64,000 nt of DNA from positions 7,549,880 through 7,613,879 of the forward strand of contig NW_002060947.1 of assembly GCF_000150275.1 (NCBI RefSeq), given 5' to 3'. Positions within the stretch are counted from its first letter, which is position 1; each line of letters begins with the position of its first letter. The DNA comes from Trichoplax adhaerens. Lineage: Eukaryota; Animalia; Placozoa. Below the pieces are notes generated by a model, which saw nothing but the letters and a program-made list of their open reading frames with translations, searched no databases and had not been told where the DNA came from. The translations under genes and the position numbers were made by a program. Shown one piece after another: positions 2,857 through 64,000 of this stretch.

Positions 2857-5800
2857 TTACGAAGTTTTTCCTTGATCCATTTCCATTTCTTCTGATATGA
2901 TTCGAAATGCAGGTTCATCAAGAACAGATTTTGTTCGTAAAGTAGTAGGATGTGTAGGACCAAAAATCTATTTAGATTTTATAATAAATGGAGCTTAATA
3001 AAATTTAGAAAAATTAAATGAAATGAAGAAAAATAAAATTATGATTCATTTCTAATTTCTTATATTATCAAGTACTTCGCAATCAATGTCATATGCTCTC
3101 TTATAGTATTTATAGGATTCTTTCTTATTTCGATATTCAATCACGATTCCCATATTGAATACAATTCGAGCGGTTAACTTATGATATTCGCCGTAGGCTT
3201 GCATGCAAACTTCAAGCGCTTTCTTGTACCACTATATTAGACAAGAACATGTATTAAAAGACTTAAAATCTAGCTTGTAGCATAAAGCATAATACACTAT
3301 GTAAAATCTATCGGCAAGACTTTCTCAATAAAATTTTAAAATTTATGAAAGATACGGCATTACATTCACTAATGGCTTTACGCCATTTGAAATAACAGCA
3401 GCATACGGTAATAATTTCATCATGTACTTGCAATTGCAAGAACAGTAATGGACTATCGAGTGTAATACCTCAGATTGTTGAGGATCAGTGTCATCATAAA
3501 CGAATGTAGCGATATTCTGATACGCTTCAGCCACATGACCGTTATCACCAAGCTTGGGAAAAGAAATTTAGGCATCTTATTAATCCCAACTACGTTATTT
3601 AAGTAAACAATTAATGTCGTAATATTCTTTGTAGTACCTCTTGAAATATTTGCAGCGCATTATGGCAATGCACTTCACACCTGACTCTACTTTCTTGGGA
3701 TAATAATTCCTTATAAGTTCTTCCAACTCGGAAAAAGGCTCCATAGTGGAATGACAACCGAAGTTCGAGTAAGCCTAATTGATACTAAAAAAATATGTCT
3801 ATGTTATCCAGTAGAACACTAAATAAATGTCCTTAATTTAAGTTAGGCGTTGATTTACTCTATTCTCGTTGCCCTTCAAGTTCTTGCGAAGAGAAATAGC
3901 TTTAAGTGCAGTTTGGATCACATTATAATGCTTCTTGGTATCATTCACACTGATAAACTCTGCAAGTTTGCTAACCTAGATCGAGCAAGATATAAAGTAA
4001 AGAATTCTGACATCAAGTTCAATATAAGTATACTTGTCTAGAACTACAGTATGTCCAACCTCGCTTTTAATATCTGTCAACAGCTGGAACAGACATGCCA
4101 TTCTATGTTTTCTTGCTCCAAGCTTGTTTTCTTCTAATTCGATTGCATCAGATAATAATGTCTCTGCATCTTTATATTGACCAGCACAACACCTATGAGT
4201 AGCATAAAAAATTATTATGTATATCAGAATTAACTACAATCGGATACGCGCATAGTTTTGCAAAGTTACTAGTTGGATTTAAAATACTAACAGGAAGCGA
4301 GCAACACGCCATTTCTTGTCAGCTAATTCTTCATCATCAGTATTTGATGTGAGTTGTTGCAGTGATTGAATGTATAGGTTTGAAGCAGTTGCATAACCTC
4401 CAGCCTAAAAAAGGACAAAAATGATTTAATATAAAGTTATGAAACTGACGCGACTTTCGAGAATTTGCCAGCATTAGTAAGTCCTTAACCTTTCGCCACG
4501 ATCGTAACAATTCGATGTTATGTTCATCTGAAGACAACTTTTCAAACACAGGCCATTCCAACAAGCATCTAGCTAGGCGACTATGATCAAGTAATTTTTC
4601 CAGATGATATGGTAATTCCTTTAGTAGTGAAATAAATTTAAAAAATGTTTATTCAATAGAAGTTCAGATATACATCATATAGTAGCTAGCTAGTATCTTC
4701 ACATTAAGAACTAACTATGTATTGATTAAAATAGTATATTTTGTTAAAGCTGTTAAAAAGTTGGGCAAGATCCTTAAGTTATGATCATATTTAGGCTATC
4801 ACTATATCACACTCATAATGGAGAAATAAATTTGCAAGTAGCTAGAAAGTTTGGTTTGTACGATCGCCATAAATTGAACTTACCTCAGCTTTGCGATCAT
4901 GATTCTCAATTTGTTCAAAGTACTCGGCCAATTTGCCATGCCACCATGTATATAAGAATTTCCTGTAGTCTTCCGAACCGGTTTTAAAATATCTACACAA
5001 TAAAATAGAATACACAGTGATAACACGAGTATATGTTAAGGCGAACACCGTGAATCTATTCTCAATTATGATTTGTTCAATAAAGTAAGTAAGGATGAAG
5101 CTGATACATACTTTCTTCTAACAGCTTTACTCATTGCTCGGTGGTAAAAGTCCAATCTTCCTTCACCAGTGTCACCGCACGGGCGGAGGAACGGCTTTAG
5201 TGAACGAAAAACAGCGGCCCATTTTGCAGCAGGGAGTGGTGGGGGTCGCTTTGATCGTGACGATTTTGCTTCATTTTTATCTTCAATATCTGTAATAAAG
5301 ATTATACACCCAGCATTAAGTAAATAACAATACGGAGTAAATCACAAAATTTATTCTATTTCAGATGCAAGAAATGAATCATAAGCAAACCATCTATATC
5401 AAATTCGTCATCAAATTTCTTGTCAAAGTCAGTTTTACGGTAAGTCTCTTCCACGGTAACATGCAGCTTTTTCGATAAATCATTCGCTAATGCAGTATCT
5501 TTATCACTATTTTCCCTTTTCGAAATCTCTTGTGCCGCGTCAGGACCTTTCTCAGTAAAATCTTTTTCACTAGGAGGTCTCAGCGTTTCATCTTCTCCAA
5601 GTAATTCAAGTAACTCTCTTTCTAGTAATCCATGACGCGAACATTCCAGAAAGCACAAGGTTGCAACCATTAAATGTCCACCACTTTCCTCTTCGAAGCG
5701 TGTTAAAACTTGCTCTAATAATCTGAAAGAAATAAAAATGATTATTATAAATACTTTCCATGGTAATAATTTTATTTCCAAGATCGAATTCATATACAAT

Positions 5801-8800
5801 ATTGAAATTAACATTAAATTGAAAATTAAAGAGCCAAATATACAGTATGATGTCCAGACTTACTCTAATAATCCGTCAGCTAGCCCTTTGATCATTTCTG
5901 TTACTTTACTAAATAAACCGAATACCCGCAGTTCTTCACAAGCAATTGACAGCCACAAAGGATTCGCTGACGCTTCTTTAGATAGTAGAGAATCCATTTG
6001 TACGGCGTCTAATCTTTTATTGAATTTCGTTAAAACTTCATCTACAATTTCCTATACATTTTTACATGAATGCAAAGCAATGTTTTATTGTAACCATTGC
6101 AACCATTAATAATTTTTTCAGTTATCTTGCAAATGAATTAGCGAAGCAATAAAAATGGAGGCATAGGAATTCAGTAGGATCAACATACCCTTCTACTATC
6201 TAGATCCAGTGGCCCACATAATACCTCTTTAGGAGGATTTAATCGCCCTGCTAGACTATGGTGACATGGTGTGCCGTTGATTACAGAACAAATGACTCTT
6301 ACATTAGGTGATAATTTAAATGGCATCCAGCTAACTTGCTCAGATTCCTTAGTTTTATCGAGCTATGTAGAAGCAATATTGGACAATTCATTACAGATTG
6401 TTAGTTATAGCATGTCTTGCAAGTACGGCAATCTTATAAAGCATAGACACTATTACATCTTAATATTGCACCTGATTCAAAGCATCGAAGAAAAGAATAG
6501 TAGGTTCAAGTTTAGGATTGCTGAGAGTGATATTTGAAAGGCGTACCAGCGATTCTGTATCAGCAGGAATTTCTCCCTACAAAATAAGTAAAAATTTAAA
6601 ACATAGACCACAACAGCCGGAGAGTGGGGGGTTATTACATGAACCCCTAGCTTCAATTCCAGTACTTTGCGATTACTAGTTCAACAGCGAGTAATGATCA
6701 ACTTACTACATATTTCAATTCCTTCAGCATTCGTTGTAATGTAAAACCGAGGTCAGTAGATCCTGGCGCAGCCCCAATAAAATGATAGAAGACATTCCAA
6801 CCCTTGTTACCACCGCTGTGCGTTAGCAAAGCAATCAAATCATCAATACGTAATAAACGTGCTAACATCGTGTATATCATCAATTGCTAGTATTAGAAAT
6901 GGAGCTAATAAATTAATTCAACGCAAAAGAAAACAATATCGAAGTACTGTGGCATACTAATGGACAGATACTGCATAAGCCTTCTAAGTTTTAAGTATAA
7001 GCTAGAGGAAAACAAACATTAATTAATATTATGCATTGATGGAGGAATCTATAGTACCCAGGTATATCGTAGTTTTGTGCTTTATTTACAGTTGTGGCAG
7101 CACTTCTAGCGATAATTGCACTTTTTCCAGCTCCTGCTACACCAACAACTACCATAGGGACACAAGTGCTTTCCGAACGAATAAAATCTTGGATCTATAT
7201 TGCAACAAGAATAAGATTTCAAAATACTGTAAATATTGACACTGTAAATATCCTTCATGTATTGAATCTCATATCCTAAAAATAAATGTAATCATTTACT
7301 GTATATGCTAATGTATGATACGTATATCCAACAAAGTAATTAATTGATAATGGTTATAGTGGCAAACGTGGTGCACTCAATTTTTTGGAATTATGCTGTT
7401 ACTACTGTCACGTACTTGATCTAAGATTTCATCTCGGCCCAAAACGCTGGAGGAACGAGAATTGAGGAAAGTCTATTAAAAACAAATGTAAGAACTTATA
7501 TTGGCTTGTAAATAGACACAGTATGTTGAAAAGTTATCCATAAAACACAATAATTTTATGGACTAGTACAATTCAATTCTACCGCTTTAGTAGAATATCA
7601 TACCACTTAGAATTCAATTTCTATCGTTGACTTATCAAAGAATTACCATATATAAGTATGATATGCATTAATTATTTAAAACTATTTTTAATTAAGTTAG
7701 AAGTTCAGATTAAATTAACTGAAAGTTAATTTATATGTTAACCCGTCAATTTTACTTTACTTAAAAAAACCAAAAGGACAAACACGCTCATAGCAATACT
7801 TTCTAATTTACAGCTGAAACACTGATCAAATTATGAGTGTTACAAGATACATGTATGAGTATTCGAAACTAATCGTTACCTCGTGTGCTTCACGTATTAC
7901 TTCTAACTGGTCCATAGATGAAGTATCTAGAGGATACTGATGACTTATTCGTGTTTTAAAAAATTCAAGTACCTGAATAAATAATAAACTTACAGTTATT
8001 TACATATACTTGAATAAAATGAATAACTTGGCATTAAGGCTAAACTCAGATCTGGAATGGCTATCATCCGTTGGAGTAATGTTTCCAATTTGATTTACTA
8101 GTATAATTAAGATTACGAGAGAATAATTATATTCCTTATTAGCTAAGATCCGTCTATTGAGTATTATTTTCTTGATAATGTCATTCTTTCTATTTATATT
8201 ATGTAATTCAGCTAATATAAATAAATAGTAATTGGTCCTTGTACGAAACACAGTTTGGAGGCACCTGTTAGTACCTCTTCGCATTCCTTGGTGCTAGGAA
8301 CTAAATCAAATGGGGGCGTTAGCACTAAATTAGTCGGTGTAACAGCTGTAACATCCTCTAAGTCATCAGCATCATTCCCTATTGAACGCCTATTCTGTTA
8401 CTGTTGTGAATATGATATATATAATTTACGATTAATTAACTGCGCAGATTCATGCGAGCATTGGCGAAAATTGAAGTTTTTTTTTTGCGTACTATCGATT
8501 CATTCCACTGCCTTGTACCCACAGAACACAAGGATATGATAATTAGGTCATTTACTAGTAAGCCCATTTGCCTTGAAGGCAGTCAAAATTGCTTTCAAGC
8601 TCTCTATATTTCGGCTGAAATGGTGGCTACCCAATGAAGGACATGGAGACTTTGTGAGAGTCATCATCGTCGACTTTTAGTTCATACTGTATTGCATATG
8701 GTACCGATACAGGGCTTTGAGTTTATACTAAACAAGGGTACTATCCATTACTTTCCATTTTGATAGTACGGCACAGCTATAGGCGTTGAGTACAAGGCCA

Positions 8801-11800
8801 TTTTATTCCATACGTGATAGAGCACAGTAGACTAGCGTATACTTTACAGCAGCATCTTGGCTGATCCTCCCTGATCTTAGCAACATAATAACCGACTCCA
8901 GCTAAGGTTGATCAGCTCCTTCCTTATTAATTATTTTTCCACAATGGAGAAATAAATTGGATAGACGAGAAATAAAAGATTCTCATATCGCAGTGGTGTT
9001 TACAAGTGAAAGTAGAAGTTCGTCTTTAATACTTTACCGTTAAGTATACCGTTCGTAATCGATAATACTAAATGAGACTAATAAATAAGTAATACAATCG
9101 AAGTAGGGCTCATTGGAATGACTATTCTGATCCAAAATTGATGATGATCACAATATGGATAAGTGTTAACCAAAAGCACTTCCAGCTTGTCAATATGGAC
9201 GTAATAGCTAATTGCTTGTGACGTGAAGTGAAGTGATTAAACTCATTTCTTGTACGAATTCTTTATTTAAATCAACTTGTCTAGTTTTTGTATGTTACAG
9301 CCTCAGATATAGTAGAGATTACTATTTATAACTCGTATAGTTAATAGCTATCGCGTACGAATAAAGAATGATAACAACTTGATCGACTTGACTGAAATGA
9401 ATTAAGAAGGAGATACTACGCAAAGTATAAAGAGCGAGGGATATACTAGTTATACTCAAATTAAGCTGTCGATTATTAGAAGATTGTAAGATCATATCGA
9501 CTGATGCTGCGCTATGAACGATAAAAAAGTTTGGAAATAAAGCGTAAAAGCTAATTGTAATAGGGTTTCAACATTATTGTACTATTAGATAAAATCGAAA
9601 TTGGATTGATCTGTAATGCTAATCAAATGAATCAAACTTGCTTGGCAGAATCATTGTTAAGAAAAGAAAACAAGCAATTACTCGATAGTTAGGTTAATGG
9701 TGTGATTATGATAACCAAACAAAAAAGGCTTTCGACTATTCTTGGCCTTGTAGTTCACATCCTGTTAAATGATTAAGTATTCTAATTTTGAACTCAGTAG
9801 CAATAATAACTTACAATGAGTTAGCGTAGACTTGGCGGTGAACAAGTAGCTATCTTAGAGAAATTTTCTACATTACGTGTCAATTGATGTTAAAACTTTT
9901 TTTTATGATTGTATCGCAACGATAGATCGATAAACCTCGTTATACGCCTAAATAAATTGTTCAAGTATTTGAATAGTTCGATGTCAAGTTCTAGCGAAGA
10001 CAGTAAAATCAGGACAACAACAGCGAGAGTTATTCAATGAAACTACTAAGGCATAATCTGGTGAAGCTAGCCGCAATGATATAAAGATAACCTATTAACA
10101 GAGTTTAATTATATATAATCATAGGAAATATTGAACAAAGTAGCGACTTATTTTCAGAGGTTGTACAATAATGACGTAACTGTTGGAACTTTCCGCAAGC
10201 GTATAGAAAAGCTTAGTGATGCATAACTACAGTAAAGTCAATCGGCCAAGATCGATCAATCATGGTGTAAAATGGCTCAATTGAAATGCTTGTAGTGTAA
10301 GTGTATGATTGCTTATAAAACTGTATTATGGGCAGTGGGAGACACTGGCTAGCTTTACAACACAGCTATAAAAGTGGATTCGATCGATTGAGATTCATCA
10401 ACAGTAAATCATATCCTTCCTTACAGTTATATACCAGGCAAAATGAAATAACAAGCTAGTTAAGGAAATATTACGAAATGAAATTATGATATAACTTACG
10501 CTTTTAACAAAGATAGAGTCTGCTCCTAGGCCTTTAACACGGACAGTATTTGATGCAGCATCAATACCATTGTATTGGCAGGTGTAAGTTACCACTCGCG
10601 ATTCCTATATTGAATTAAAATCCCATTGCAATTAAAACGTATGTTTGCCTAAATAGACGTAGAAAAATTTAGCAAATTTATGAAACACTGAATAAAAAAG
10701 AGAGTAAAATGGTTGTCTATGGACGATATTAAAGAGTTAAATGAGACACAAATTGATGAAATTAGTAGTATTTATATGTATTTGCTAAATGGAAGTAGCA
10801 TATAGGATAATAATTGATTCAACACTTGTTATAACCGCGTTTAGAGTAGAGAATATTGCAATCAATGTTGTGATTTTACGCCATAGGACAAATGGTTAAT
10901 CATTCTTGAAATGATAGCAATCATAAAAATGAATAAAAAGTATGAAGCAAAGGTTATGCTCGATGAGTCTAAGGAAATAGCCATACGAGCTATTGCCGAT
11001 GAAGTTTTCATTTGTGGTGGAGTAAAAGGCAGTAAGTACTGACTAAAAGTTTGGATGCAAGCAGGAATTGTTGATGATGATGGAAAGGATAAACAAGCAC
11101 CAAAATACTCAATAATTTCATGTTGTGACTTTTTATCTATAATTTCTTATAAGTGATTACACTTTGAATGGTTCAATTAACAGTCCAAGCACATTATTCG
11201 GCAACTTTCATCCACCTTACTCTTCTTTACTGCTCGTTAGGTAAGCAGATTTATTGATTTTTGTTTAATGTGACCGATCGGTAGTTCTACCAGCCCCCGC
11301 CCCCAACCATCTCCTGTATACTTTTAGCAAAACGATTCTTTCGTCGTCAAGGCAGTATGATTTGAGGAAGAGAATTGTTGCTATTACCAATGCATTTTCA
11401 AGCTAGCAGTAAAGTTGACGTTGTTTTCCTATTACAGTAGATGCTGTAAGATCCAGTGTTGAATTACTATTCCATCCATACCTCAAGATCGATCAATGTG
11501 ATAATACAACGCAAAGAATGTCAAAAGGGGAAGTGGCTTTGATTTGGAAAGTTGAATCAAAAAATGAGGACAACTACGATTGTCAGGCAAAAAATAAGCC
11601 AAAATGAACATCATAACAACAGCAGGACTATCAGATTAGTATTACTAGGACTACCAATAATCATAGCATAGAATTCATCATTTAAATCTACCGAGATGTG
11701 GATCGTATAAGCAGGAAGAAAGATGCGCTGAAGAATTCAAGTTTGTTGTTTTGAAAATGAACATGGGAATCCTGCACGAGTCAAGGACAGCAAAAGCATC

Positions 11801-14800
11801 GCCAGCAGACTCTACAGTAGTCAACAGTACGGTATCAAACACAACCCTAAAAGGCAGCGGCGACGGCTCTCCGGTCACCCACTACAACAAATGATTGAAA
11901 AGGGGCGGTCGGATCGTCAACCACGATCTCTACTACACTTCATCGCATCGAACAATGGATATCGATACCGTTATTAGTACCAGTATGGACCGTTATTAGT
12001 ACCGGTATGGACCGGTAGAGTGATTGGACAAGTCCAACGGTACAGTATCGTGGGTTTGGTTTTGACTCAGTACGTCACTCTGATACGGTCAATCGCCGGA
12101 ATCGGTCATTCCCCGCGTTGGACCCAAACAACGCTACCAGACCTCCTAACAGTTACGCAGTATCCAGCTCGATTTGATCCAGTTGGTCTGTTTTCACCTA
12201 CTCTCATCTACTCGACTAGCCCGTTATTTATCTAGAATTACAGCTAGCTAAAGTCTTGGCAGTTTGAAGTTCTCCTGACAGTTACGCAGTATCCAGCTCG
12301 ATTTGATCCAGTTGGTCTGTTTTCACCTACTCTCATCTACTCGACTAGCCCGTTATTTACCTAGAATTACAGCTAGCTAAAGTCTTGGCAGTTTGAAGTT
12401 CTCCTAACAGTTACGCAGTATCCAGCTCGATTTAATCCAGCTGGTCTGTTTTCACCTACTCTCATCTACTTTACTAGCCCCTTATATACCTAGAATTACA
12501 GCTAGCTAAAGTCTTGGCAGTTTGAAGTTCTCCTAACAGTTACGCAGTATCCAGCTCGATTTGATCCAGCTGGTCTATTTTCACCTACTCTCATCTATTT
12601 GACTAGCCCTTTATTTACCTAGAATTACAGTTAGATAAAGTCTTGGCAGTTTGAAGTTCTCCTAATAGTTACGCAGTATCCAGCTCGATTTGATCCAGCT
12701 GGTCTGTTTTCACCTACTCTCATCTACTTGACTAGCCCCTTATTTACCTAGAATTACAGTTAGATAAAGTCTTGGCAGTTTGAAGTTCTCCTAATAGTTA
12801 CGCAGTATCCAGCTCGATTTGATCCAGTTGGTCTGTTTTCACCTACTCTCATCTACTTGACTAGCCCCTTATTTACCTAGAATTACAGCTAGCTAAAGTC
12901 TTGGCAGTTTGAAGTTCTTTGATATGCGACGATAGAAGCAATCGTCAAAGATAGATCGATTATGCACTGTAGATAGATTGTATCATTGTGCTTAGATATG
13001 TCATCAATTAACATGAAAGATACTACAGGTAAAGACTACTGTCGTCAAGACAAAACGACGAGTATGAGAAAGTCGCGGCAATTTAGAGTTCTCCTTTTTC
13101 TTAGATATGTAACGATAGAAGCAATCATCAAAAATAGATCGATTATACATATATTGGTCATTCCCCAGCAAATGACCGATTCCCGGGATTGATCACAGAA
13201 TAATGAAGTGTAAAGAGCTCACTGACTATAAACGTATGATAGTAACGGTACATTTTCGTAAAGTATCTTAAGTGAGAAGGTTATGCTATCACAAAATAAT
13301 ACATTTCAAAGACAGGATAATGAAATCGATTTATGGCATCATGTAAATACATTACCGGTACTTGCTTACTAGATCAACTCTATATTGTTACTGTTTACTA
13401 AAATAATTATCACTATTTAGCAAGGAGTTGAGAAAAAAATTGAAAGAAATTGTTGTGTGTATCACATATCTCACATAAAAGTTACTGGGAAGTTTAGTAT
13501 AGCAAAGGAAAAGCATAGTATGAATAAGTATCAACTAATCTTCATTCCAAACCGTTATCCTCATCTGTCTTTAACTTTGGTAAAACGCTACTGTATACTA
13601 TGAGACTAGCTGTTAAATATATATAGATAATTTAGTAACTATATTGTAATAGGCCAAAAAAAATACAGCATGTTCAAGTTCTTAATAAATAGCTCGGAAA
13701 TACCTGCAGTTCACTATTTGCTGAAAGTATTACATCAATATAACATCAACTAGTCAGTCAAGAAAGTAATACATGCCAGCATATCTTTGGTTTTAGCGTA
13801 TACTACTCATGTCATCAGTAGTAACACAATTCGTCATAAATCTAAATCAGATTTTATCCCTGGTTTTGTCGTCAATCATAGTCTCATAGCACTAAATTGT
13901 CATAGCTTTAATTAATGACTCATTATTCTACTGATTTACTGAGCACTCTTAATTAGATATCTTGCAAGAATTACTACTATCTAAATATGAAACTCTGTCA
14001 GATGCTATTGATTGGGTCGTAGAAAAAGATGAAATTATTCACTCTAAGTAAAATCCATAACGCAAGGATATGTATGTACTGTATATAGCATGAAGAATAT
14101 ATCCTATTTTCAATTTTTCGTACCGGAAATCTTCCTAGTATACACTGTTTCAACATATCCATTTTTTCTGCTGCTTCAGTGGTCGTTTCAGAGAAGTTTT
14201 CCTTAACTTCATCGGGTAACGTTGATAGAAAAGTCTGATCACGAACTAAAAATAACGCTGAAAGAATAATTCGAGGATAAATTGAGAACTTGAATTTGGA
14301 TATTTATGATAGTAATTACCTATCAGTTTAAGCAATTCTATTACGCAAAGTAGGATGAATACTCCGTATGGATCAAAAATAAAAATCGACGAAAATCAAT
14401 AATTAAATAATACAAGTAATTCATAAATAATAATGTTTGCGATACCATTTGGGTTAGCGTTACGGAATGCGCCATGAATAATTTCCATCTCAGTGATAGA
14501 GGTACCAAAAATCCAACCATATTCTTGTGCTAAGTACTGAGGAACCTCTGATATTTGGGGAATCCAACCGGTACGATGACTACATATTAACGTATAAAGC
14601 ATATAGTTGCGTTATAAAGTTAGCTGCCTCTGTTAAATGAATACGATAATGGAGTAAGTATAGTAGGCCGAATTAACAGTTTGCGTTACATTAAATTAAA
14701 CTTTAATGTAAGTATAAATCATAGCATTTCATGAACCAAACTTTAAATTTTCTAGACTAGATCACTTAAGCCAAACTTAATATAGCCATAAATTAATTTA

Positions 14801-16132: not shown

Positions 16133-16508
16133 GATGCAGGATTACTCTAAACTTGGAATTATATACGAATTTATCGTATCTATACTATCAAAATAAAGGA
16201 TTGGCTTGCTAAATATGTATAAAATATAAATCGTGAACCAGAAATTTAGAATCGGGTTGATCTCGTTACTTTTTGAAATAAAACAACACCAAAATTGGGG
16301 TTACTAATGATTAACGAGCGAAATAATAATTAGTACTCATGTACTGCATTATTAATAAACTATGAAGTTATATGAAACATTCTTTTCTAAATCGAAGAAT
16401 TAACAATAAAGTAATCGATGCCATAAACAAAAGTTATTGAGAAACAGTTTTATTTCTACTCATTAAATGATATTGGAAAGTAAAAATGAAGTTCAAAAAA
16501 TTAAAAAC

Positions 16509-50300: not shown

Positions 50301-53300
50301 TGCTTTGCCTACAGTTTCACGATAGAATCTAGTCTTACAGGTAGAAATATTGCCATCCAATGGAACACTTTCCAAGTCAGAAATAGCAGACTGACTTGTT
50401 TTAATTTGTGAACTAATGATGCTAATAACTGAGATAGATTCTTTTCTATTCTTCAAATCGATTAGAATATGTAGCATTGCTGCACTAATTTGAGCTAAAA
50501 GCTTACTTTTTTCGAACGGCTTTGCTCATGGCGCGGTGATAGAAATCGAGTCTTCCTTCGCCACTATCGCCGCATGGTCGTAGAAATGGCTTTAGTGCTC
50601 GAAATACGACAGCCCATTTAGCAGCAGGCAATGGTTGTCTCTTAGAAGGAATCGATTGCGATTCCTCGACATAATCGCCTATAAAACATTGTAAATCATT
50701 TAGTGATTCATATCTAGTCACGTAAGCAACATACCTGGGCAGCTAATCAACCTAAGGTAGAAAAGAACTTCTAATCCAAAAGTCAATGCAGAAATACTCA
50801 CTAGAAGAATTTTTCTTTTCGCTAAAATCGGTTTTACGATATGTTTCTTCTACCGTGACATGGAGTTGCTTTGATAAATCCTTTGCTAAGGTCTCATCTA
50901 CATCTTTTTCTTCTATGTGCTTTTCTGGAGATATTTTTGTTACGGTAGGCAATCCTCCACTAAGATATTGCTCCGACGATGGTGGTTCCAGTGCTTCATC
51001 TTCTCCAAGTAATTCTAGCAATTCTCGCTCTAATAATCCATGGCGAGAACATTCCAACAAGCAAAGTGTTGCTACCATTAAATGTCCACCACTCTCAGCT
51101 TCAAAGCGTGTAAGGACTTGTTCTAATAATCTAAAAATAATACTAAATGAGATCATACTCTATCCTCATTCGGATCAACAAAGTTTATAGGATGTGACTT
51201 TTCAATCATGGTTAAATACTGTCATTAGACTTACTCCAACAAACCATCGGCTAATCCTTTAATCATTTCCGTAACTTTACTAAATAAACCAAAAACTCGC
51301 AGTTCTTCACAAGCAATCGATAACCAAAGTGGATTAGCCGATGCTTCCTTAGATAGTAAAAGCTCCATTTGCTTACTATCCAATCTTTTATTAAATTTGG
51401 TCAAAATTTGATCGGCAATTTCCTAAAATTTTAAATATTATTCTATTTAACCACTACCTAATACCTATAGATATAAAATAACTGATCCGATATTCTGTAT
51501 CCTATTTCAATCCAAGGCGTTAGCTTTTCGCTATTTAATTCTAATCTACTTAATCGCTGTCTCTAAATGTAAAATAAATAGCAAACATTCCGCATCCTAT
51601 TCCAATAGAAGAATTTAAATTTCTGTAGTTTAAATCTAACCTAGCTAATCACTACCTCTAGACGTAAAATAAGTGAGCAGACATCCTGCGTTTTACTCCA
51701 ATTCAAGAACTTAACTTTCTGCTATTTGAATCTAATATAGTTAGTAACTGAGCCGATAGATTCTGCATCCTACTCCAATCTAAGGACTTAACTTTGCGCG
51801 AATTAAAAGTAATTTAATTAATCGCTACCTCTTGACGCAAAATAATAAAACAGATATTCCACACGACCGCACACACTCTATTCCGTACCCTATTCCAACT
51901 CAAGGACTTAACTCTTCGCGATTTAAATCTAATCTAGTTAATCGCTGCCTCCAGATATAAAATAACTGAGCCCACATTCCGCATTCTATCCCTATCCAGC
52001 GACTTGACTTTCTGCTATTTAATCTCTTAAACTATAAGGTAGATTCTAGGGACTGTGCTTATGCTTTAATACTGTAGAAATTTTCGAAATGAAGATAAAC
52101 CGTTTGAATTTTATCAGTCATCGTAACTTAGCATCTTGCCAACGCTGCGTCTAGATGTACAATAGCTGAGCTGATATTCTATATCCTATCCCAAGGACTT
52201 ATCTTTCCGCTATTTAAATCTAATTTAATTAGTCGCTATCGCTATATGTAAAATAATAGAGCTGATATTCTGTATCCTATCCCAAGGACTTATCTTTCCG
52301 CTATTTATATCTAATTTAATTAATCATTACCTTTAGACGTGCAATAACTCAACAGGTATTCTGTATCCTATTCCACGGACTTACCTGTTCGCTATTTAAA
52401 TCTGATCTAATTCATCATTACCTCCAGATGTAAAATAACTCCGCAGTAATTCATGTATCCTACTTCAAGGACTTACCTTTCTGCTATTTAAATCTAATGG
52501 ACCACAAAAAACTTCCTTAGGAGGCTCGATCCGTTTGGCTAAGCTACGATGGCAAGGTGTATCGTTAATCACTGAACATATAATGCGAACCTTTTTCGAT
52601 AGTGTAAAGGGTAGCCAAGTAACTTGTTCAGCTTCTTTAGTTTTATCAAGCTAATAGGTCATTGAAACGGTGAATTAGCCATGCTGAATGAATATTGATG
52701 TAATAAGGAGAGAGACAAAGAATCTTAAGGGTATCTGACAAGAACCTGATTTAAGGCGTCGAAAAATAAAATGGTAGGTGGTAGGTTAGGGTTATTCAAT
52801 GTAATATTGGATAATCGCACTAATGATTCAATATCGGCAGGTATTTCTCCCTACATCATTTAAAAAATATATGAATTAATCTTCAAGTAATTGTTCCATA
52901 TTGCAGGCTATGATGAATTTCTTTTCACTATATCTAATTATGTTATCGTATAACCATTCTAATCCCTATATAGTCTCCAGTACTTACAACATATTTCAAC
53001 TCCTTTAGCATCCGTTGTAACATAAAGCCAAGATCAGTTGATCCTGGTGCAGCTCCAATAAAATGGTAAAAGACATTCCAGCCCTTGTTACTGCCACTAA
53101 GAAATGAATTGATAACGATTATTAATACAGGAGATATTTTCATTTCTAAAGGTTTTATGTGATCATGGTGGAGATCTTTTCAAGAAAGATATTCTTAGTC
53201 CTAATTAGATGCTCACTTTGGTATGTCATGATTGCGGGCCTTATTGACTGTAGTGGCCGCACTTCGTGCTAAAACTGCACTTTTTCCAGCTCCTGCAACG

Positions 53301-56300
53301 CCAACTAAAACTAAAGGTACACCGGAACCTTTGGAGCAGATATAATCTTGGATCTAAAGATTCCAAAGATTCATCAATAATTATAGAGATTGGCTAGATT
53401 AGTAATAAATTTTGCTAACTATCGCGACTAAATTAGTGTAATTCCAAATTTAATATTTTACGAAATTTCGAACCTGATCTAAAATATCATCTCGACCCAA
53501 TACGGTAGATGATCGCGTATTCAAGAATACCTAGGAATAAAAAGTTAATATTTGGTCATGAAGGAATGTAAACTGATCCAAATTCTTGGGAGAGTAATCA
53601 AAAAGGAAGTAAAACGGGATACATCTATATTTTATATAGTATATAGGCTACGAAGGCAGAAGAAAGACGATTACCAGTCTATGCGCTAGAAATTCGCAAA
53701 AAAAAGATCCATAACTACTAGATGATCATTTTGTCTATTGTAATATTTGGCGAATGTATCAGATCGAAGAATTTATCCGTTGATTTTCTATGAAGGATTT
53801 TCAACATATTTATACTCATATGCTGCATACAGATTCATTTACCTCATGTGCTTCACGTATAACCTCCAATTTATCCATCGGAGAATCGTCTAAAGGATAC
53901 TGATGACTAATTTGACGTTTAAAGAATTCAATCACCTGTAAAAGTTCATGCTTGAGAATCTGGTATAACTTAACCTGGCTAACTATTACTTTACCAAGAA
54001 TGTACCTCATTATCGTAAAATGGCTGATAATGAACTACGAGATATTTGATGTGTACTAAAATAGTTTAGCTGTTTCGTAACCTTACCGTTTTAACAAAAG
54101 TCGATTCTGGTCCTAAACCTTGAACTCGAATAGTACCGTTAATTTCATCGATTCCATTAAAGGAGCAGCTATAACTTACCACACGTGAATCCTAAAAATA
54201 TATCAATAGTGTAAAGCCCATTGATGGGGATCTGCAATTTGACTAAATTACGAAACTTAATGACAATTAAATGAAAAGAACTGTAAATTTGGAGATGCTA
54301 GCAATTGGATGCTTATATTAAGCCTCTCAAAAGACAATAAATGGAAGTAACTGTAGATTTAGAGATGCTAGCGGGAAGGTGTTAATGCTAAATGTTAAGC
54401 TAGTTCATAGAGGTCAATATAATTAATTACTTTATGATCATTTTGAGCACTTTATTACGTGACTGATGCAAAGTTCTATCATCGTGTTCATTATTGAACA
54501 GCAATTATGACAGAAATAAATCGAAGTAACTAAAGCAGAACCATTTTAAAAGATATAAATGATCTATTTACTGTATATTGATTTATTAACCTAATACTTT
54601 GTCAGATAAATGATAGATATTTGGCTCTATGCTGGTACAGAATAGTCATTATAGTTTCTTGAACAACGTCGAAGCTTTAGAAATAGGATGGATGAGAAAA
54701 ATTTGGAAAAGTTATAAGTATTTACAGCAATATCTGTGAAGGCTAAACCATGGACTACTAGAAGAACACCTTTAAATCTTCTTCAGGTCTTCTTCTAGTG
54801 GTCCATGGTTAAACTAAGAATATATGCTACACAATATGTAATAGAGGCGAGCAAGAGCTAGCTAGAAGTGGAGAAATACGCAAATGCTTGCACCGCGCGA
54901 ATTAATTACTTAGGAAAAGAATGAACGAACTTGCCATTAAAACAAATCGCCCAAGCCTTGGAGCAGGTAAGAAGCATTAATAAAATGTATGCTCGAAGGT
55001 ATCCATGCAGAATAGTGCCATGTTGTACGGTATTCAAAATATTAGGGATGCGAGGATGTGGGGAAAGTGGGGTTGTTACAATGTAAGGATAAAGTATAAA
55101 AAATATGAAGTATACCAGCAGAAACTCGGCTAAGAATAGATTGTATGTATTTCGCAAGTTTTACGCTCAAATTTTTACACCCATACATCGATGTTGCAAA
55201 TTTTCTTGTACTAGCTTACCACATATGAACTTATGACATTATAATGACTTAACTCACCGGAAATCTCCCTTTGATACATGTCTTTAGGAGCTTCATCTTT
55301 TGCAATGCTTCTTCAGATGATTCGGTAAAATCATTTTTAAAATTGTTCGGTATAGATGTTATGAATTCTGGATCACGAATAAGAAATAATGCTAGAAATA
55401 TTGAAAGTAGCAATCGTAAATAAGAACCAACGTAAAGGGATAATGCACTAAAACGAAATGAGCTAGATACTGGCTAGAAAGTCTTATTACAGTTAGGATT
55501 AGCTTTACGAAATGCTCCATGAATAATTTCCATTTCAGTTATAGAAGTTCCAAAAATCCATCCATACTCTTGAGCTAAATTTTGAGGTACATCGGATTGT
55601 TCAGGAATCCAACCTGAACGGTGGCTGATCAATATTTACAATAATTGATGTTTAAGGTAGAGGACGGTATAAACTATTATTACGGTACGCCCATAAATCA
55701 AAATTTTTAACATTTAAACTAAAAAAAATTTCATCATATCGCACCTGGACAGATTTAAAAAGAAAGGCCATTGATTATCTTCGTAGCATCGATCTATTTC
55801 TCCAAGGCAGATCCTTAACGTTTCTTCTGATGTAGCTTCTTTCGGCACTCCCTAGATAAATTTTAAGGAGAGAATACACGTTCCTTTGAGCTAATACCTT
55901 AAAGTCACAATGGATATTCAACCAATGGTAGACAAAATTAATCAAAAATGATAATAACGACTTGTATGAAAGGGATAATATACTGAAGAGATTTATACTA
56001 AAATATAGCAAATTTGTAGTATAATATCGCTTAAAGATTGTATGTCAATATTATTGGGGAAAAGATACCTGTAATGTAACTAGTATTGTGATTGTAGACT
56101 GTTAGCCATGTTTAGTATAATGTACGGTAGATATTTATCCTAAAAGATATTTGGTAGCTATAACTATAGACTGTAGTGGTAGAGACTCTATGCTAGAGTA
56201 CAGATCACTATATACAGTAAGGTGTTGAGTTACTAATAAGGCTATAGGTAAAAATAGAACTTTAAATCATATATTAGGATATGGTTAATTCATTGTACTT

Positions 56301-57762
56301 TGGCTGGTGTGAATAATGTCTACATAAGTACTGTAGTCGTATCGATATTGGATTAATGATGGTCCGCAGTAGAATAATCTGACTAAGAATAGTTTAACTA
56401 TGTGTAAAATAAGGTAAAAGGTTGCTATGCGGATTGTAGCTGCAAATGCTACGAAAAGTATAAAAGCATGCAACTTTAGATTATTCTGTTAGTTCGTTGT
56501 AGAAGTCTTTCGTAGTAGTATGCGGCTAGAGTAGAGCTGTGTGTAGTTAATCTTTGTATAAGATTCAATAAAGCCCTTATTTTTCTATAATATGGAATCT
56601 CGTGATTGATATATATCACAATACCATAGAGCATAGACAAGAACTGAGTAAATTTCAGAAACAATACCAAGAAGTGATTAAGGATATAATACTTTTCATG
56701 ATGAGTAGAATAAAATGTTCACTAGAATTTAATTAAATTCGTGCCTAATATCAATACATGGCAAATTATACAAGTGCCCTGTAGTCTACTTGAAAGATAG
56801 GATAACACATCCATAAGTACGCGATATCATGAATTCTGAGCATTAAACAAGTAAAGGATTCATTGCCGCCAATGTATATTAATAAATACAAGCAACGGTA
56901 GCTAGAACTAGAGAAAACGTACAGTTCCTACCCTTATATCAAGTTTTATATTTTACTTACCCAGCGTAAATCACATTCAATGAGATGCAGCTTTAATTTT
57001 TCACACCATAACCTCAGTTCTGGAAACACCTAAGACGAAAGTTTAAAGTTGTGTAAGTTATAGTAATAAAAATCAATTATAATTTTCACCGTGCTCAAAT
57101 TTTATCCCTAAAATTGAGATATTCAATATATACATAAGTAGTCCATTTATTATCCTTTGCTTTAGCTGAACAAACACTAAATCTAAACATTATTGAATAG
57201 CTTTGTTAGCATTGACAAGGCATTATACCTGCTTAACTAAAACTTCACGTTCTGCATGGAAATCTTTAAATGTTGAGGACACAAATAAACGAATAGTTTT
57301 CCAACCACGTCTTTTGAAAGCTGGTTTAATGTCTTCTTGATATTTAATCGATGTTGCTCGAACAGCATTCCAACATTCCATTGGAGTCGATGGCTGCAGT
57401 TCACAGACTTGTTGCAATGACATTTCTGGTACTTGTGGTAATTCTGACCATAAGATTGTAAAGGTTTCAATAGTTCCTGATGTTTTTGTCACATTTGTAA
57501 TTTTACGTAAATTTGTAGTTATGGAGTGCTTATTTTTGTCTGCACTACTCCTGCTATCATTATTCTTAGTGCTAGATTTCAATGCTTTAGTATTCGAGCC
57601 TTGGACTGCATCTCTCGTTGAATGATCAGATTCATTTGTCGAAACATTTGTACTTTGGATTTGCGGATTTGATGAATGATTATTTGCAGAAGCGGACGGA
57701 CGAGTAAGTGGTCGATTGGCTTCGTTGACAACTTGTAGTTGCTTTCCTGATGCACAACCCAT
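47313..57762 (-). CDS. Copy D: DUF4062-NACHT-TPR paralog, 24 exons, about 1174 aa
   Basis: Exons: 57762-57229, 57029-56961, 55851-55745, 55624-55491, 55391-55258, 54191-54087, 53935-53843, 53530-53474, 53353-53217, 53096-52988, 52850-52746, 52650-52477, 51422-51235, 51130-50802, 50678-50507, 50131-50023, 49792-49664, 49583-49468, 49370-49238, 48717-48601, 48502-48356, 48233-48150, 47646-47491, 47399-47313. The start is placed at MGCASGK by homology with copies A-C. Confidence 0.92.
48905..48945. repeat. Hairpin of the same ggaccactag...ctagtggtcc family, in intron 19 of copy D
   Basis: Sequence accactagaaattt-ctta-aaatttctagtggt forms a perfect 14-bp stem. Confidence 0.6.
51440..52498. repeat. 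About 10 degenerate 80-120 bp tandem units, each containing the exon-12 3' end and splice donor, in intron 12 of copy D
   Basis: The unit ggactta(c/t/a)ctttc(t/c)gctatttaaatctaat...agatgtaaaataa...attctgtatcctat..caa recurs near 51516, 51611, 51708, 51785, 51906, 52001, 52197, 52288, 52379 and 52471. The last one is the real exon/intron junction. Confidence 0.88.
54747..54809. mobile_element. Short hairpin / MITE-like element; relatives at 43560-43602 and 48905-48945
   Basis: Arms are accatggactactagaagaa and ttcttctagtggtccatggt (19/20 inverted match), with TAA on both flanks. Confidence 0.6.
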
Positions 57763-59240: not shown

Positions 59241-59311
59241 GAATTAGACTGGCGAATTAGACTGGCGAATTAGACTGCCGAACTAGACTGCCGAATTAGA
59301 CTGCCGAATTA
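59241..59311. repeat. 13-bp minisatellite, about 5.5 copies
   Basis: gaattagactg(g/c)c is repeated head to tail. Confidence 0.92.
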
Positions 59312-61891
59312 AACGACCGATATCGGTTGTCTACACGTCTACTTACATACCCGTAAGTATCTATAAAGTAGTTCTCTACTAAATAGCATTAGTGTCAGTT
59401 ATGCTTTAATACTGTAGTGGATATGAAACATCTTTACGAGGGACATGGTGAACGTCTACTTTGTCCACTACATATTCGAATATTTAACAATCCAAAATGA
59501 AAACATTCTAACGAAAATGATCATTTCATCTACACATTTTAATCATACCTATGTGTACCTTGAAAAATAAAAATTTTTCTATTACGGTTTGCTGGCAAAA
59601 TTGGCCTTAATGCTTTTCGAGAATTTAATTTTTCCAATTTCTTGCCAATTGCTATTTCAAGTAGCTATCAGTATTTAACTATAAGGATTAAAATAAGAAT
59701 AGATGCTACTAATTATCGATCTCGGTTCTGTTTCATTTACTCTCTCAAGTAAAATGTGATTTAATATATTCGTGATCTTTAGGAAGAACCACCTCCGTTA
59801 CCATGGGGACATATAGTCGTCATAAAGTGTATCAATGAATATACTTGCATTGTAACTAGCTCATTTACGGAACGTTTAATGGGTGGACAATTCTATTACA
59901 GAAAGTTAGCTAAAAGTTTATACTGATGTTTTGCCGGTGGTATTTTAAATTGCATATGTTTCAGTTATTGCTATGATAAAGAAAAATTCAATTACAAAAG
60001 TACACATTAAATGATATGCAGCAAGATGGGCAAACTATCGGGTAAGCATTAAGTATTTTATTCCTAATTATACTATAAATAATACTTTTGACTTGAGTAA
60101 TAGCTGGTATAATTAAAGATAAATAAAATTATCTTTAAAAATCGGATGTTAATGTACGCACAACAATTACTGTAAGATCTTACTCATACCATATAACAAA
60201 TAGAAAATATTCTTATCAACTATGCCGGTATTGTGCTAATTCCAAAAAGATCGGTGAATAAAATGATCGCATTTTGATGTTTCATTATTCCGCTATCTTC
60301 CTCACATAATATTTCATGTTTTGTATCTCAGGAATAATTTATTTTTAAGTTTACGAGCTGTAAGCTTAATATCGGTAGTATTATTTTTGCATCACTTTCA
60401 GCTCCAGAGCGGAGTTAAATAATAATGCTATCCGAAAGTTTATAAATAAGACGAAATGTTTCTTGGCATCTTTATCTACACCTTTAAGTGAATTTATGCT
60501 TACTGAATGGTTGCCTGTATTAGCATTATAATTAAAAATAGAATTAAGCAACGGTATCCTGCTATCAATGTTATACGAAGTTCTATCTAGATTATGAGAT
60601 TATATACGATTGTCATCAAGGAAAATCTTAAACTTTGAGTCTTGTTTTTCTTTTAACATTGTAAGCTAGCTTATATTAAATATACATGTGAAGCGTAATA
60701 ATAGAAGCAGAGATTAATTTATAAGATACCCTAAAGATAGATTTCTATTCTTAGTTAAGTCTGTCATTGTTTAAGAATTGATCATGATTGGAGGAGTAAA
60801 CAAGTTTTTATTCATTTATCAGCTAAGAAATCCAATTACGACTATCATACAATACAGCAATTACTACATGTTCAAAGTTAGTCTTAAACTGTACTATGGC
60901 TGTAAGGATATCATTATTGATTTATTAGTTGCTACAAGTGATTACTTTTATCTCTTATTCGCATATAATAATGCTCATTTGTTCATCCTGTAGTATTGAA
61001 TTTCCGCACATTTCGTTTCTTGATGACTAACTCTCAGAGTGTATAGAACAATTTATTTTATTTATTCATTGTATTACAGTAGGATGGCTACTATACGAGT
61101 ATGTATACTTACTATAATTTTTCGGTATAATCGATAAATTGATCACATTGATTGCTAGGAATAAGTAAAGTAATGAAAGGGGTATTCTTACTAATGATAA
61201 TTTCCCCTGTCGACTTTGGAACACAGAATTGTAATTAAAACTTAAAATTCCAACAAAGCTATAAATAACATTAGTCAGCTTGTCCGTTGTTTAAATATTT
61301 GGTTTAATTTTATTTATATTACTGTAGTGAAAAGTTATCATGGTTATATTGATCCTATCAATTAGTTATTAATTAAATATCTATATATGCATGCATTTTA
61401 TAATAAATGAAATGCAAACTTATCAGAGTATCTATACAAGTTCTGTCAATAATTAAGATAGGCGTCGACAGCTTGTAGTTTGCGGTTGGAAAATACAGTG
61501 ATAAAATAATGGCTATAAAATGCGTAATACACCACACGAATTGCATGATGGATAGTAGCCGCTTAGGACGTATAAAGATTTTAAGTTAACTTTACACAAG
61601 TGACATAACACTTCTATTTTAAAATAGATTACATTATTGTTAGTATAATGAATATCTTAGAGAATAAGTCGCTAAAGTTGTATTCCTCCAGCACGTAAAC
61701 TTATCAATATATTGTCGTAAGATTTACCTTAAACGCGTCACGTACTGATTACAGAGACAAATGGATTACAGTGCTTCATAAATTTGCTATAATTATAATT
61801 AGTTCATGGTAAAGGAGATCAGTGAGCAATAAATGGTAGAAGTATGCATTGAGGATATCTGTGTCAAGATAAATAAAGTGCTCAACAGAAT

Positions 61892-63768
61892 CTAGTCGTT
61901 TTCGCTATCCCTTTCCAAGCTTTCGGCAATAATTCGAAACCCGGGCTCATCAAGAACAGCTTTGGTTCGCAATGTAGATGGATGCGTTGGCCCAAGAATC
62001 TATAAAAGCAAAGGACCATTGTTACTATGCAAGTGATTATTCTGAAATAATAAAGCAGCTATCATGAGAAGAATTTGTAAGAAAATAATATAGCAGTTGC
62101 CACTACACCTATAAAAATATGCCTTATCAACATACTTCACATTTTATCTTGTATGCTCTCAGATAGTAATGATACGACTCATGCTTATTTTTGTATTCAA
62201 TGACAATTCCCATATTAAACACAATTCGTGAAGTTAATCTATGATTTTCACCATAGGCTTGGACACATAAATCAAGGGCTTTATGGTATTGCTAATATAT
62301 AAAGAAATAAGATTGGTTAAATCTTGTCAAAGTTCGGTACAAACAAGCAAACATTGGATCAAATCACATATTTTAAGTTATATTTTGACAAAGTATGACA
62401 ACAAAGAGTACACAGATCAGTTGACAACTAACATCAAAATTAACTACCGAAATAAGAAAATTTTAGTAAACTTACGACCTAGCCAATATTACCTGCATTT
62501 GCTCACTACTTCCTTCTTTCTTGACAAAGGTAGCAACATTTTGATAAGCTTCCGCTAAATGGCCAACGTCTCCCAACTATTGTTACGGTTTGAACTTTAG
62601 ATACATGCGTTCTAATAATCTACAATTTTTAAAGTATTCTTTTGCTATTTTAGATAGATTGAGTTTACGAACCTCCTGAAATATTTGTATCGCATTATTG
62701 CAATGTACTTCACATTTCGTAATTCCTTCTGCCGGGGTTAGATCTTTATATGCAAAATTTGATTGACTAAATGCGCCATAATGAAACGATACAAGTAGTT
62801 CCAATAAGCCCAAATGATACTGTATTGCAAAGAGAAATAAAGGCAAGAACATAAGCATAAAAAGTGGAATAGATCTGTTACAATATGCTAGAGGTATGCA
62901 ATTAGATATCTTAAGTCCTGTTCTATTTTAAATTATTACTAATTAATTTCACTTATTTTTACCCATAAAAGCTGTATCAATAACCTTATTATCATCACCG
63001 CTGAGATTTTTGCGATAAGAAATTGCCTTTAAACCAGTTTGCACTACTTCATAGTGATCTTTGGCTCCTTGAACCGTTATAAATTCTCGTAATTTACTAT
63101 CCTATAAACGTAGTAATGTTAATAAGCAAGTTTTGATTGTGAGAGGGTCAAAAGGGTATTTAATTAAGGCTTAATCGGCAAATTGTTCGTTTAAATACCT
63201 ATATTGCGAAATGAACGAATCATACCTCACTTAAAGTATCGGTCAGTAATTCGAATTGATTGGCAAGCTTTTCTTTCCTGCCACCAAGAGTATTTTGTTC
63301 CATATCAATTGCCTCATTAACTAATCTTTGACATTCGCTATGCTGTCCAGCATGACACCTACATTTACACTTAAATTTATCAACTATCCATGCCATTAAG
63401 AACTACATAATAAATATGAAATTTAATCTTTAGCCTTACAAGAAGCGCGCCACTCGCCATTTTTTGTCAGCAATTTCGTCATCTGTAGCTGTTGCAGCTA
63501 GTTGCTCTAGCGATTGAGAGTAAAGTGTTGCCGCAGTTACATACCCTCCAGCCTAATTAGAAATAATATTTTTGTTATTAATTGTTCGGTCTCTCCATTA
63601 TTTATTGTTTCATTAAAACTAAAACATAAGGCATCAAACCGAGCGCCATGATCGTAACAGTTCAATGTTGTATTCATCGGCAGATAATTTCTCGAATATG
63701 GGCCATTCTAGCAAACAACGAGCTAGACGACTATGATCCAGCAACTTCTCCAAGTGATAAGGTAATTC
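61892..63768 (-). CDS. Copy E (partial): exons 17-24 of a fifth paralog; its 5' part lies beyond the window end
   Basis: Exons: 63768-63640 (ELPYHLEKLLDHSRLARCLLEWP), 63552-63440, 63358-63226, 63101-62985, 62819-62673, 62576-62493, 62291-62136, 61999-61892 (ILGPTHPSTLRTKAVLDEPGFRII...TAG). Confidence 0.9.
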
Positions 63769-64000
63769 CTGTTGATAATCACTCATTTTATTAGCATAAC
63801 AATAGGATAGAGATAAAAAATTTAAATAACAAGTGCTAGGAACAAATTCTTTTGTAACTATCAAACTTGATAAAGTTTTGATAAGACCATAACTAGCAAT
63901 CCCAATTACAAATCATATCAAATTATCACGCTTCCATTACTACCGCAGAATAATTTCATTCCCTGAATGTACTTACAAAGATTTAAGGTAAGTCATAAAA

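Follow-up and report, generated by a model that had tools for sequence, protein, structure and literature searches.

A head-to-tail array of six genes encoding predicted acylated NIR-STAND-TPR proteins in the placozoan Trichoplax adhaerens

We analyzed a stretch of 64,000 nucleotides from the genome of Trichoplax adhaerens (NCBI RefSeq assembly GCF_000150275.1, contig NW_002060947.1; C1410:7549880-7613879, referred to here as the window). Its minus strand carries four complete 24-exon paralogs, genes a to d, as well as the final 8 exons of a fifth, gene e. Together with a sixth gene, f, located beyond the end of the window, they form a head-to-tail array of about 87 kb. The encoded proteins combine a putative N-terminal lipid anchor with a NIR domain, a STAND NTPase, and C-terminal TPRs. 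We consider it fairly probable that the array represents six placozoan-specific tandem paralogs of an ancient animal family of acylated NIR NADase-STAND-TPR proteins, which would act as ligand-gated membrane switches.

Results

A head-to-tail array of intact paralogs

The genes were modeled from 24 conserved blocks found in an all-against-all comparison of minus-strand open frames; the set was complete four times, and its last eight blocks were present a fifth time. As splice sites we chose the AG/GT common to all copies at the same aligned position and compatible in phase, and ambiguous sites were settled by query continuity with P0151, a protein of Trichoplax sp. H2, and by reading the variable exon 14/15 junction. 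In the resulting models of genes a to d, GT-AG bounds all introns and no internal stop occurs. The 23 coding introns lie at common positions, and their phase string, 00210000200021200200000, is the same in all four complete genes; the partial gene e agrees with them in its last seven intron phases. An initial annotation of this DNA had described identical intron positions and phases and an absence of stops and frameshifts, and both descriptions were borne out, as was its start coordinate, 2857, where the last exon of gene a ends exactly. It had also counted five intact paralogs on one strand, 13 to 15 kb apart. Strand and spacing hold (start-to-start distances along the array are 13.1, 13.7, 14.8, and 15.3 kb), but the window contains four complete genes and one third of the fifth. 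The DNA is AT-rich (about 32% GC), the homologous open frames are all on the minus strand, and an open reading frame scan found no long bacterial-style frames in the window.

The extent of the array was given by a search for exon 14 in the genome (105.6 Mb in 1414 contigs), which returned six copies on scaffold C1410. We fetched DNA past the window end, giving extended coordinates over 94 kb in all. Outside the window, genes e and f were placed by the matches of their exons to the H2 proteins P0172 and P0151, respectively (90 to 100%), rather than by exon-by-exon models.

The models agree with H2 proteins and with RNA. Gene c and P0174 are identical (1169/1169 residues). Identity is 99.9% between gene b and P0173 and 98% between gene d and P0175, the latter pair with a single 15-residue difference; for gene e, the part inside the window equals the last 328 residues of P0172 (328/328). 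The order c-b-a is also kept in H2, where the ortholog of gene a, with a product of 1177 residues, lies downstream of the ortholog of gene b. Genes a and b are transcribed, and their splicing agrees with the models. RNA contigs from three studies (run X8 is on record as RNA-seq, and X6 and X7 are probable RNA runs) are joined at 14257/14446, 14579/14876, 14982/15502, and 15570/15740, corresponding to introns 4 to 1 of gene a, and at 19345/19498 and 19653/20060, corresponding to introns 23 and 22 of gene b. Every joint is bounded by CT..AC on the plus strand, equivalent to GT..AG on the other. From the same contigs, gene a has a noncoding leader exon; a 981-nt intron in the 5' untranslated region (UTR) separates it from position 16208, which precedes the ATG by 76 nt. 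The contigs extend the 3' UTR of gene b to about 18576-18734.

Decaying duplicates or an annotation artifact might be suspected from the fragmentary Joint Genome Institute (JGI) 2008 models at the locus (P0003, 631 residues; P0176, 673 residues) and from a stray exon-14 piece on scaffold C1351. For genes a to d, this explanation is refuted by the intact frames, by ratios of nonsynonymous to synonymous divergence (omega) well below 1, by the match to H2 proteins, and by spliced RNA, and we give it a negligible chance overall.

The N-terminal domain keeps the functional residues of a NADase

DUF4062, renamed NIR or TeTIR, has been shown experimentally to be a TIR-like NADase in three preprints by Osinski et al., Le Mouellic et al., and Hornebeck et al. 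(2026; 10.64898/2026.05.01.722283; 10.64898/2026.09.04.749371; 10.64898/2026.09.21.753143). According to these preprints, NIR is the effector of the bacterial defense systems Avs2, Swarozyc, Vulcan, and Vesta, and a bacterial NIR-STAND-TPR Avs2 protein (PsAvs2) depletes NAD+ upon sensing of phage terminase. Most eukaryotic NIR domains are found at the N terminus of NLR-like proteins with WD40 or TPR repeats; mammalian NIR proteins comprise TEP1, NWD1, NWD2, TTC41, and NPHP3, which lacks the glutamate, and TEP1 is the only animal member studied.

The family profile matched the solved human TEP1 NADase domain (11gz_A) over 220 residues (E=8e-51), with profile positions 44-263 aligned against chain residues 1-218. 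With chain residue 1 taken as TEP1 894, the TEP1 residues F902, R914, R942-W943-G944, C959, and R976 and the catalytic glutamate E1008 correspond to F155, R167, R195-W196-G197, C211, R234, and E264 of gene c, while R908 corresponds to K161, a conservative replacement. The TEP1 positions defined by mutagenesis are all kept in genes a to f, and those other than R908 are invariant or nearly so across 67 family members. The earlier statement that function cannot be seen in the sequence is therefore outdated for the effector, since DUF4062 is now a shown NADase and its functional residues are kept. On the basis of their sequences, we predict that the array copies are competent NADases and NTPases.

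A predicted lipid anchor and a STAND-like fold

A lipid-anchor motif had been proposed for these proteins, and we found an MGC start in all six genes. The N termini of genes a to d read MGCASGK, MGCASSK, or MGCSSSK and those of genes e and f read MGCSSSR and MGCASSR, so that all fit the M-G-C-x-x-[STAGCN] motif (array consensus, MGC[AS]S[GS][KR]) and the consensus for N-myristoylation. A cysteine at position 3, beside a myristoylated glycine at position 2, is the palmitoylation site in G-alpha-i and Src-family proteins, and dual acylation (myristoyl-Gly2 and palmitoyl-Cys3) is predicted for the array proteins. The MGC start is also present in cnidarian, echinoderm, hemichordate, amphioxus, brachiopod, and annelid homologs; mollusc, lamprey, and Xenopus homologs start with MGS, and in bacterial homologs the first residues already belong to the NIR domain, without a tail. 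As the MGC start is kept across animal phyla, the anchor would be an old trait of the animal family. An N-terminal acylation motif of NIR proteins is not mentioned in the three 2026 preprints.

For the Pfam, fold, and language-model neighbor searches, the H2 proteins P0173 and P0174 were used in place of the gene models. DUF4062 (PF13271) scored 30.8 to 31.6 bits in P0172, P0173, P0174, and P0175 (cut-off, 24.7), and TPR_12 exceeded its cut-off in the copies scanned. AAA_16 was at or near its cut-off (32.5 versus 32.6 bits in gene c), and HTH_NWD1 (weakly), nSTAND1, and TPR_NPHP3 gave matches below theirs; single exons gave sub-threshold Pfam matches only. No LRR and no death-fold (CARD, PYD, or DED) domain was found in the Pfam scan. 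A Walker A motif, GVAGAGKSA (GxAGAGKS), and a Walker B motif, ILFFDALNQLD, are kept in all copies a to f. In the alignment of 67 family members, the invariant positions are F155, E166, W196, G197, G236, and E264 in the N-terminal domain and G427, G429, and K430 in Walker A. The family profile's C-terminal portion matches the TPRs of kinesin light chain (KLC).

An AlphaFold2 model of gene c had a mean predicted local distance difference test score (pLDDT) of 82.5 and a predicted template modeling score (pTM) of 0.74, with residues 1-88 and 714-763 disordered. Its best Foldseek matches were SAMD9, the Pyrococcus STAND-TPR protein 6mfv, Apaf-1, Avs3, EfAvs5, RPP1, NLRC4, NLRP9, and CED-4, with low global TM-scores, as expected with a multidomain model. 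The predicted fold of the array proteins is thus STAND-like, and the NLR-like tripartite architecture put forward in the initial annotation, with an N-terminal effector, a STAND NTPase, and C-terminal TPRs, was recovered.

An ancient animal family with a placozoan-specific expansion

A search with P0151 returned full-length homologs with 43 to 46% identity over 91 to 100% of the length. They occur in scleractinian and soft corals, Nematostella, hydrozoans, and a scyphozoan, in echinoderms, hemichordates, and amphioxus, and in Lingula, an annelid, a nemertean, and molluscs; amphibians and lamprey have shorter forms, and other eukaryotes and bacteria have remoter homologs (25 to 29% identity for the bacterial ones). 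Database matches to the array include TRIADDRAFT_25073 and RDD44589.1 of Trichoplax sp. H2 (90% identity).

In a maximum likelihood tree (LG+G4, quick search, deep branches provisional), genes a to f and their H2 orthologs formed one clade, with an SH-like approximate likelihood ratio test (SH-aLRT) support of 100. The sister of this clade is a divergent Trichoplax paralog, P0177, on another scaffold (SH-aLRT, 99). The placozoan group adjoins Cnidaria (SH-aLRT, 88), and other phyla have small duplications of their own. The species sampled have 1 to 4 copies each, the family tree tracks the species tree, and no one-to-one orthologs of individual array copies from distant animals were found in the tree. 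Judging from these homologs and the tree, the family is ancient, pan-metazoan, and low in copy number, and the tandem expansion alone is placozoan specific. The genes had initially been seen as a lineage-specific family; this stands for the expansion and fails for the family.

Homologs are listed in databases under names such as "TPR repeat-containing protein DDB_G0287407-like" and "telomerase protein component 1-like." These names, and the fact that the solved structure nearest to the NIR module comes from TEP1, could be taken to mean that the array encodes TEP1 orthologs or paralogs acting in vault or telomerase particles. We regard this as very improbable, because the Pfam scan found no TROVE, vWA, or WD40 domain, TPRs being present instead, and because the N-terminal acylation motif points to membranes. 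The name "telomerase protein component 1" is a misnomer for the array genes.

A published census of placozoan NLRs lists 3 NACHT and 39 NB-ARC genes. The array genes are absent from its table, and IPR025139 (DUF4062) is given once, for a NACHT-WD40 gene; the array was therefore overlooked. A literature search by gene names returned nothing on function.

The duplicates are old and under purifying selection

The paralogs share 69 to 81% protein identity. The closest pair, c-d, has a synonymous divergence (dS, Nei-Gojobori) of 1.15; all other pairs are saturated (above 2 or undefined). None of 7469 nt of the introns of gene c could be aligned to those of gene d by blastn, in agreement with the initial view that the introns are too diverged to align. 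Saturated dS and intact frames likewise bear out the view that the duplicates are old and all retained.

Between genes c and d, omega is lowest in the NIR domain (0.02), followed by the winged helix (0.03), the NTPase and the first TPR half (0.06 each), and the second TPR half (0.11), and it is higher in residues 701-800, which are partly disordered (0.25), and in the mostly disordered N-terminal tail (0.31). Among the folded domains, nonsynonymous divergence (dN) is highest in the C-terminal TPR half (0.16 versus 0.02 to 0.07). T. adhaerens (H1) and H2 differ at the locus by 0.85% in noncoding and by 0.22% in coding DNA; genes b and c together show 13 coding differences, at most one of which is nonsynonymous, and no presence/absence variation between H1 and H2 was found for genes a to c. 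Selection is thus strongly purifying along the whole protein and weaker in the C-terminal TPRs. We found no arms-race signal, the power for episodic selection being limited by saturation and by the small number of copies. Two disordered stretches and the C-terminal TPR half vary most among copies a to f, which therefore probably differ in ligand or partner.

These data bear on the proposal that the proteins are innate immune non-self sensors, with TPRs for distinct microbial or viral ligands and with NAD+ depletion or cell death as the outcome. This role is possible, and we hold it tentatively. Antiphage NIR-STAND-TPR Avs2 proteins have the same architecture and eukaryotic NIR domains reside mostly in NLR-like proteins, while the placozoan-specific tandem expansion and the dN peak in the C-terminal TPR half are also in its favor. 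However, omega in the TPRs is only 0.06 to 0.11, the duplicates are old, with saturated dS, almost all H1-H2 changes in genes b and c are synonymous and fewer differences are seen in coding than in noncoding DNA, the family tree follows the species tree with few copies per species, and H1 and H2 do not differ in the presence of genes a to c. Of the signs against a non-self receptor named in the initial annotation, uniform purifying selection along the protein was nearly found, and one-to-one orthologs in distant animals were not.

X-box-like palindromes upstream of five genes

X-box-like palindromes with at most 3 mismatches to GTTGCCATGGCAAC occur 9 times in the window, versus 0.9 expected. 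Over the extended 94 kb, intergenic DNA contains 6 such sites in 27.9 kb, versus about 0.45 expected, and five of the six genes have at least one upstream (Table 1). A loose X-box pattern is at chance level (10 versus 9.6 expected), and the enrichment is limited to versions with a CCATGG core or with at most 3 mismatches. The flanks of the gene d site are similar to those of the gene c site, a CRE-like TACGTCA adjoins the site in genes e and f, and a TACGCATGC-like box is present upstream of genes a, e, and f. By blastn, no similarity to the rest of the array was found for the region upstream of gene a, the only gene with a transcription start supported by RNA. These sites hint at RFX control of the array genes and thus provide a lead for their expression in ciliated cells. 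X-box-like promoter modules of NIR genes are not mentioned in the three 2026 preprints.

Ciliary sensing, which had also been named as a candidate role, gains a lead from these promoter motifs. The array proteins would then be catalytically active relatives of nephrocystin-3 (NPHP3) at the ciliary or apical membrane of a ciliated epithelium, sensing an endogenous signal. NPHP3 is N-myristoylated, and the Gly2 acylation motif of the array proteins is consistent with such a relationship. The X-box-like palindromes upstream of genes a, c, d, e, and f, one of them close to the RNA 5' end of gene a, argue in the same direction, as do weak, repeated Pfam matches to NPHP3_N, NPHP3_hel, and TPR_NPHP3, slow evolution, and the small number of copies across animals. 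On the other hand, the catalytic glutamate is absent in NPHP3 (2026 preprint) but kept in the array, TPR_NPHP3 scores 29.9 to 48.6 bits in the array and 63.6 bits in P0177, far under the cut-off of 100, and such palindromes are also possible at non-ciliary RFX targets. We therefore hold this role just as tentatively, and microbial surveillance and a homeostatic role at the ciliary or apical membrane carry roughly equal weight.

A farther-reaching version, which we consider doubtful, is that the family is a pan-metazoan, dually acylated, and active sister lineage of NPHP3, lost in ecdysozoans and mammals, whose members would be RFX-controlled NAD+-cleaving ciliary or apical switches, with six specificities in placozoans. 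If true, it would tie TIR-like NAD+ cleavage to cilium-associated signaling in animals.

Table 1. Genes, gene c domains, and X-box-like sites of the array (positions beyond 64,000 are extended coordinates)
Feature	Coordinates	Strand	Details
Gene a, coding sequence	16132..2857	minus	24 exons, 1137 aa
Gene a, exons (listed part)	16132-15740, 15570-15502, 14982-14876, 14579-14446, 14257-14124, 10604-10500, 7972-7880 ... 2967-2857	minus	
Gene a, noncoding 5' leader exon	17190..17395	minus	RNA joint 16208->17190 in three runs
Gene a, X-box-like palindrome	17445..17458		GTCGCTATGGCTAC; the longest RNA contig has its 5' end about 50 nt downstream
Gene b, coding sequence	29230..19247	minus	24 exons, 1135 aa
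Gene c, coding sequence	42976..31998	minus	24 exons, 1169 aa
Gene c, N-terminal tail	42976-42533	minus	
Gene c, NIR/TeTIR (DUF4062)	42532-38530	minus	
Gene c, STAND NTPase	38152-36669	minus	
Gene c, winged helix	36668-36288	minus	
Gene c, variable insert	36287-35836	minus	
Gene c, TPR	35835-32001	minus	
Gene c, X-box-like palindrome	45199..45212		GTTGCCATGGAGAC; 2.2 kb upstream of ATG
Gene c, second X-box-like site	44346-44359		weaker
Gene d, coding sequence	57762..47313	minus	24 exons, 1174 aa
Gene d, X-box-like palindrome	59797..59810		GTTACCATGGGGAC; 2.0 kb upstream of ATG
Gene e, in-window 3' part	63768..61892	minus	exons 17-24, 328 aa
Gene e, full span	73016 (ATG)..61892	minus	exons match P0172
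Gene e, X-box-like site	73919		
Gene f	89887..~79611	minus	exons match P0151
Gene f, X-box-like site	90939		

Repeats, fragments, and other loci

Intron 5 of gene a (3.5 kb) contains six copies of a 129-bp tandem repeat (12143-12918, 96% matches), a repeat array that Trichoplax sp. H2 shares. In gene d, intron 12 is 1054 nt long, versus 95 to 142 nt in genes a to c, and contains tandem repeats of 91 to 97 bp at 51526-51743 and 52150-52498, the latter reaching about 20 nt into exon 12. P0151 had suggested a micro-exon of 17 residues between exons 16 and 17, which is absent in genes a to d. Exon 17 of gene f (extended coordinates 81732-81550) is about 18 codons longer than in genes a to e, and this accounts for the extra residues 818-834 of P0151.

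A lone exon-14-like piece, 97% identical to gene a, is located at C1351:35310-35627, at the very end of a 35.8-kb scaffold. As an isolated scaffold-end fragment, it was rejected as a seventh gene, and it could be left over from the assembly or from a haplotype. TRIADDRAFT_25733 (P0176), a model from 2008, looks chimeric: it matches this fragment at 99%, and its first 52 residues correspond to exon 1 of gene e.

Three other loci in the genome have DUF4062 matches (C1414:8857223, C1406:1945311, and C1396:1029995) and are probably TEP1, NWD-type, and zinc-knot relatives; P0177 is located on a further scaffold, different from these. In addition, more than 250 matches to KLC/NPHP3-type TPR profiles occur genome-wide in long stop-free frames of hundreds to more than 1000 codons (7814 on C1339); examples of TPR-rich loci are C1339, C1402:577700-580700, C1413:903700-907100, and C1410:8192600-8225700. 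They are indicative of a very large expansion of TPR genes that has no relation to the array. When the TPR_NPHP3 profile was used to look for an NPHP3 ortholog in the genome, these KLC-like matches swamped the search.

Discussion

By analogy with Avs2, TNLs, and TEP1, we propose that the array proteins would work as follows. Myristate on Gly2 and palmitate on Cys3 would hold the protein at the cytosolic face of a membrane, where the TPR solenoid would keep the NTPase closed and autoinhibited until a ligand binds. Nucleotide exchange would then lead to oligomerization and activation of the NIR domains, which would cleave NAD+ locally.

Several observations weigh against this reading of the array. 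Transcription was examined for two of the six genes, a and b. Gene b has no X-box-like site, and the sites of the other genes are related by paralogy and thus do not represent independent events. Pfam NACHT (PF05729) has no match in the array copies and scores 17.8 bits in P0177, versus a cut-off of 26.7, which most orthologs from other phyla reach. Purified TEP1 TeTIR is active as a monomer (2026 preprint), and oligomerization-dependent activation is therefore unestablished for the NIR domain. Lastly, full-length human NWD1, NWD2, and NPHP3 have no NADase activity in vitro (2026 preprint), so kept residues do not guarantee activity. This inactivity would also fit array proteins that are non-enzymatic scaffolds, with a NIR domain retained only for structural or binding purposes and a function as membrane-bound adaptors. 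We consider this unlikely, given that the functional residues of TEP1, including the catalytic glutamate, are kept, with a lysine for R908, and that omega is at its lowest in the NIR domain.

Several known systems resemble the array. As in TEP1 (TeTIR-NACHT), a NIR domain homologous over its full 220 residues stands directly upstream of a NACHT-type NTPase, and the catalytic glutamate, the RWG loop, and the Arg/Cys/Phe substrate residues are kept. Unlike TEP1, the array proteins lack the TROVE/vWA extension, carry TPRs in place of WD40 repeats, start with the MGC motif, and are encoded by six genes in tandem; they are not TEP1 orthologs. TTC41 (present in mouse; a pseudogene, TTC41P, in humans) has a published N-terminal NIR domain, a NACHT-type NTPase, and TPRs, and it is likened to the array by architecture. 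A "TTC41-like" cluster is among the closest language-model neighbors of the array protein, and TTC41 is not among the 120 best sequence matches. With NPHP3, the array shares the Gly2 myristoylation motif, a NIR domain (degenerate in NPHP3), a P-loop STAND module, and KLC-like TPRs. The array proteins are nevertheless not NPHP3 orthologs, as they keep the catalytic glutamate and remain under the cut-off of TPR_NPHP3 (PF24885).

Bacterial Avs2-type proteins (PsAvs2) and DUF4062-NACHT-TPR proteins have the same three-part architecture, but the array genes encode an acylated tail and have 23 coding introns, and the ligands of the bacterial proteins are phage proteins. Metazoan NLRs and plant TNLs follow the same sensor logic of effector, STAND NTPase, and repeats, and TNLs also have an NAD-cleaving TIR effector. 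In contrast to canonical NLRs and TNLs, the array proteins have no LRR or death-fold domain and combine the distinct TIR-like NIR family with a TPR sensor and a predicted membrane anchor.

The array is a local expansion of a kind recognized in 2026 and not a new kind of receptor. It provides a compact, intact tandem NIR-NACHT-TPR family in one of the simplest animals, and the locus makes it testable whether STAND-gated NAD+ cleavage at membranes takes place in animals, as STAND-gated NAD+ cleavage does in plants and bacteria.

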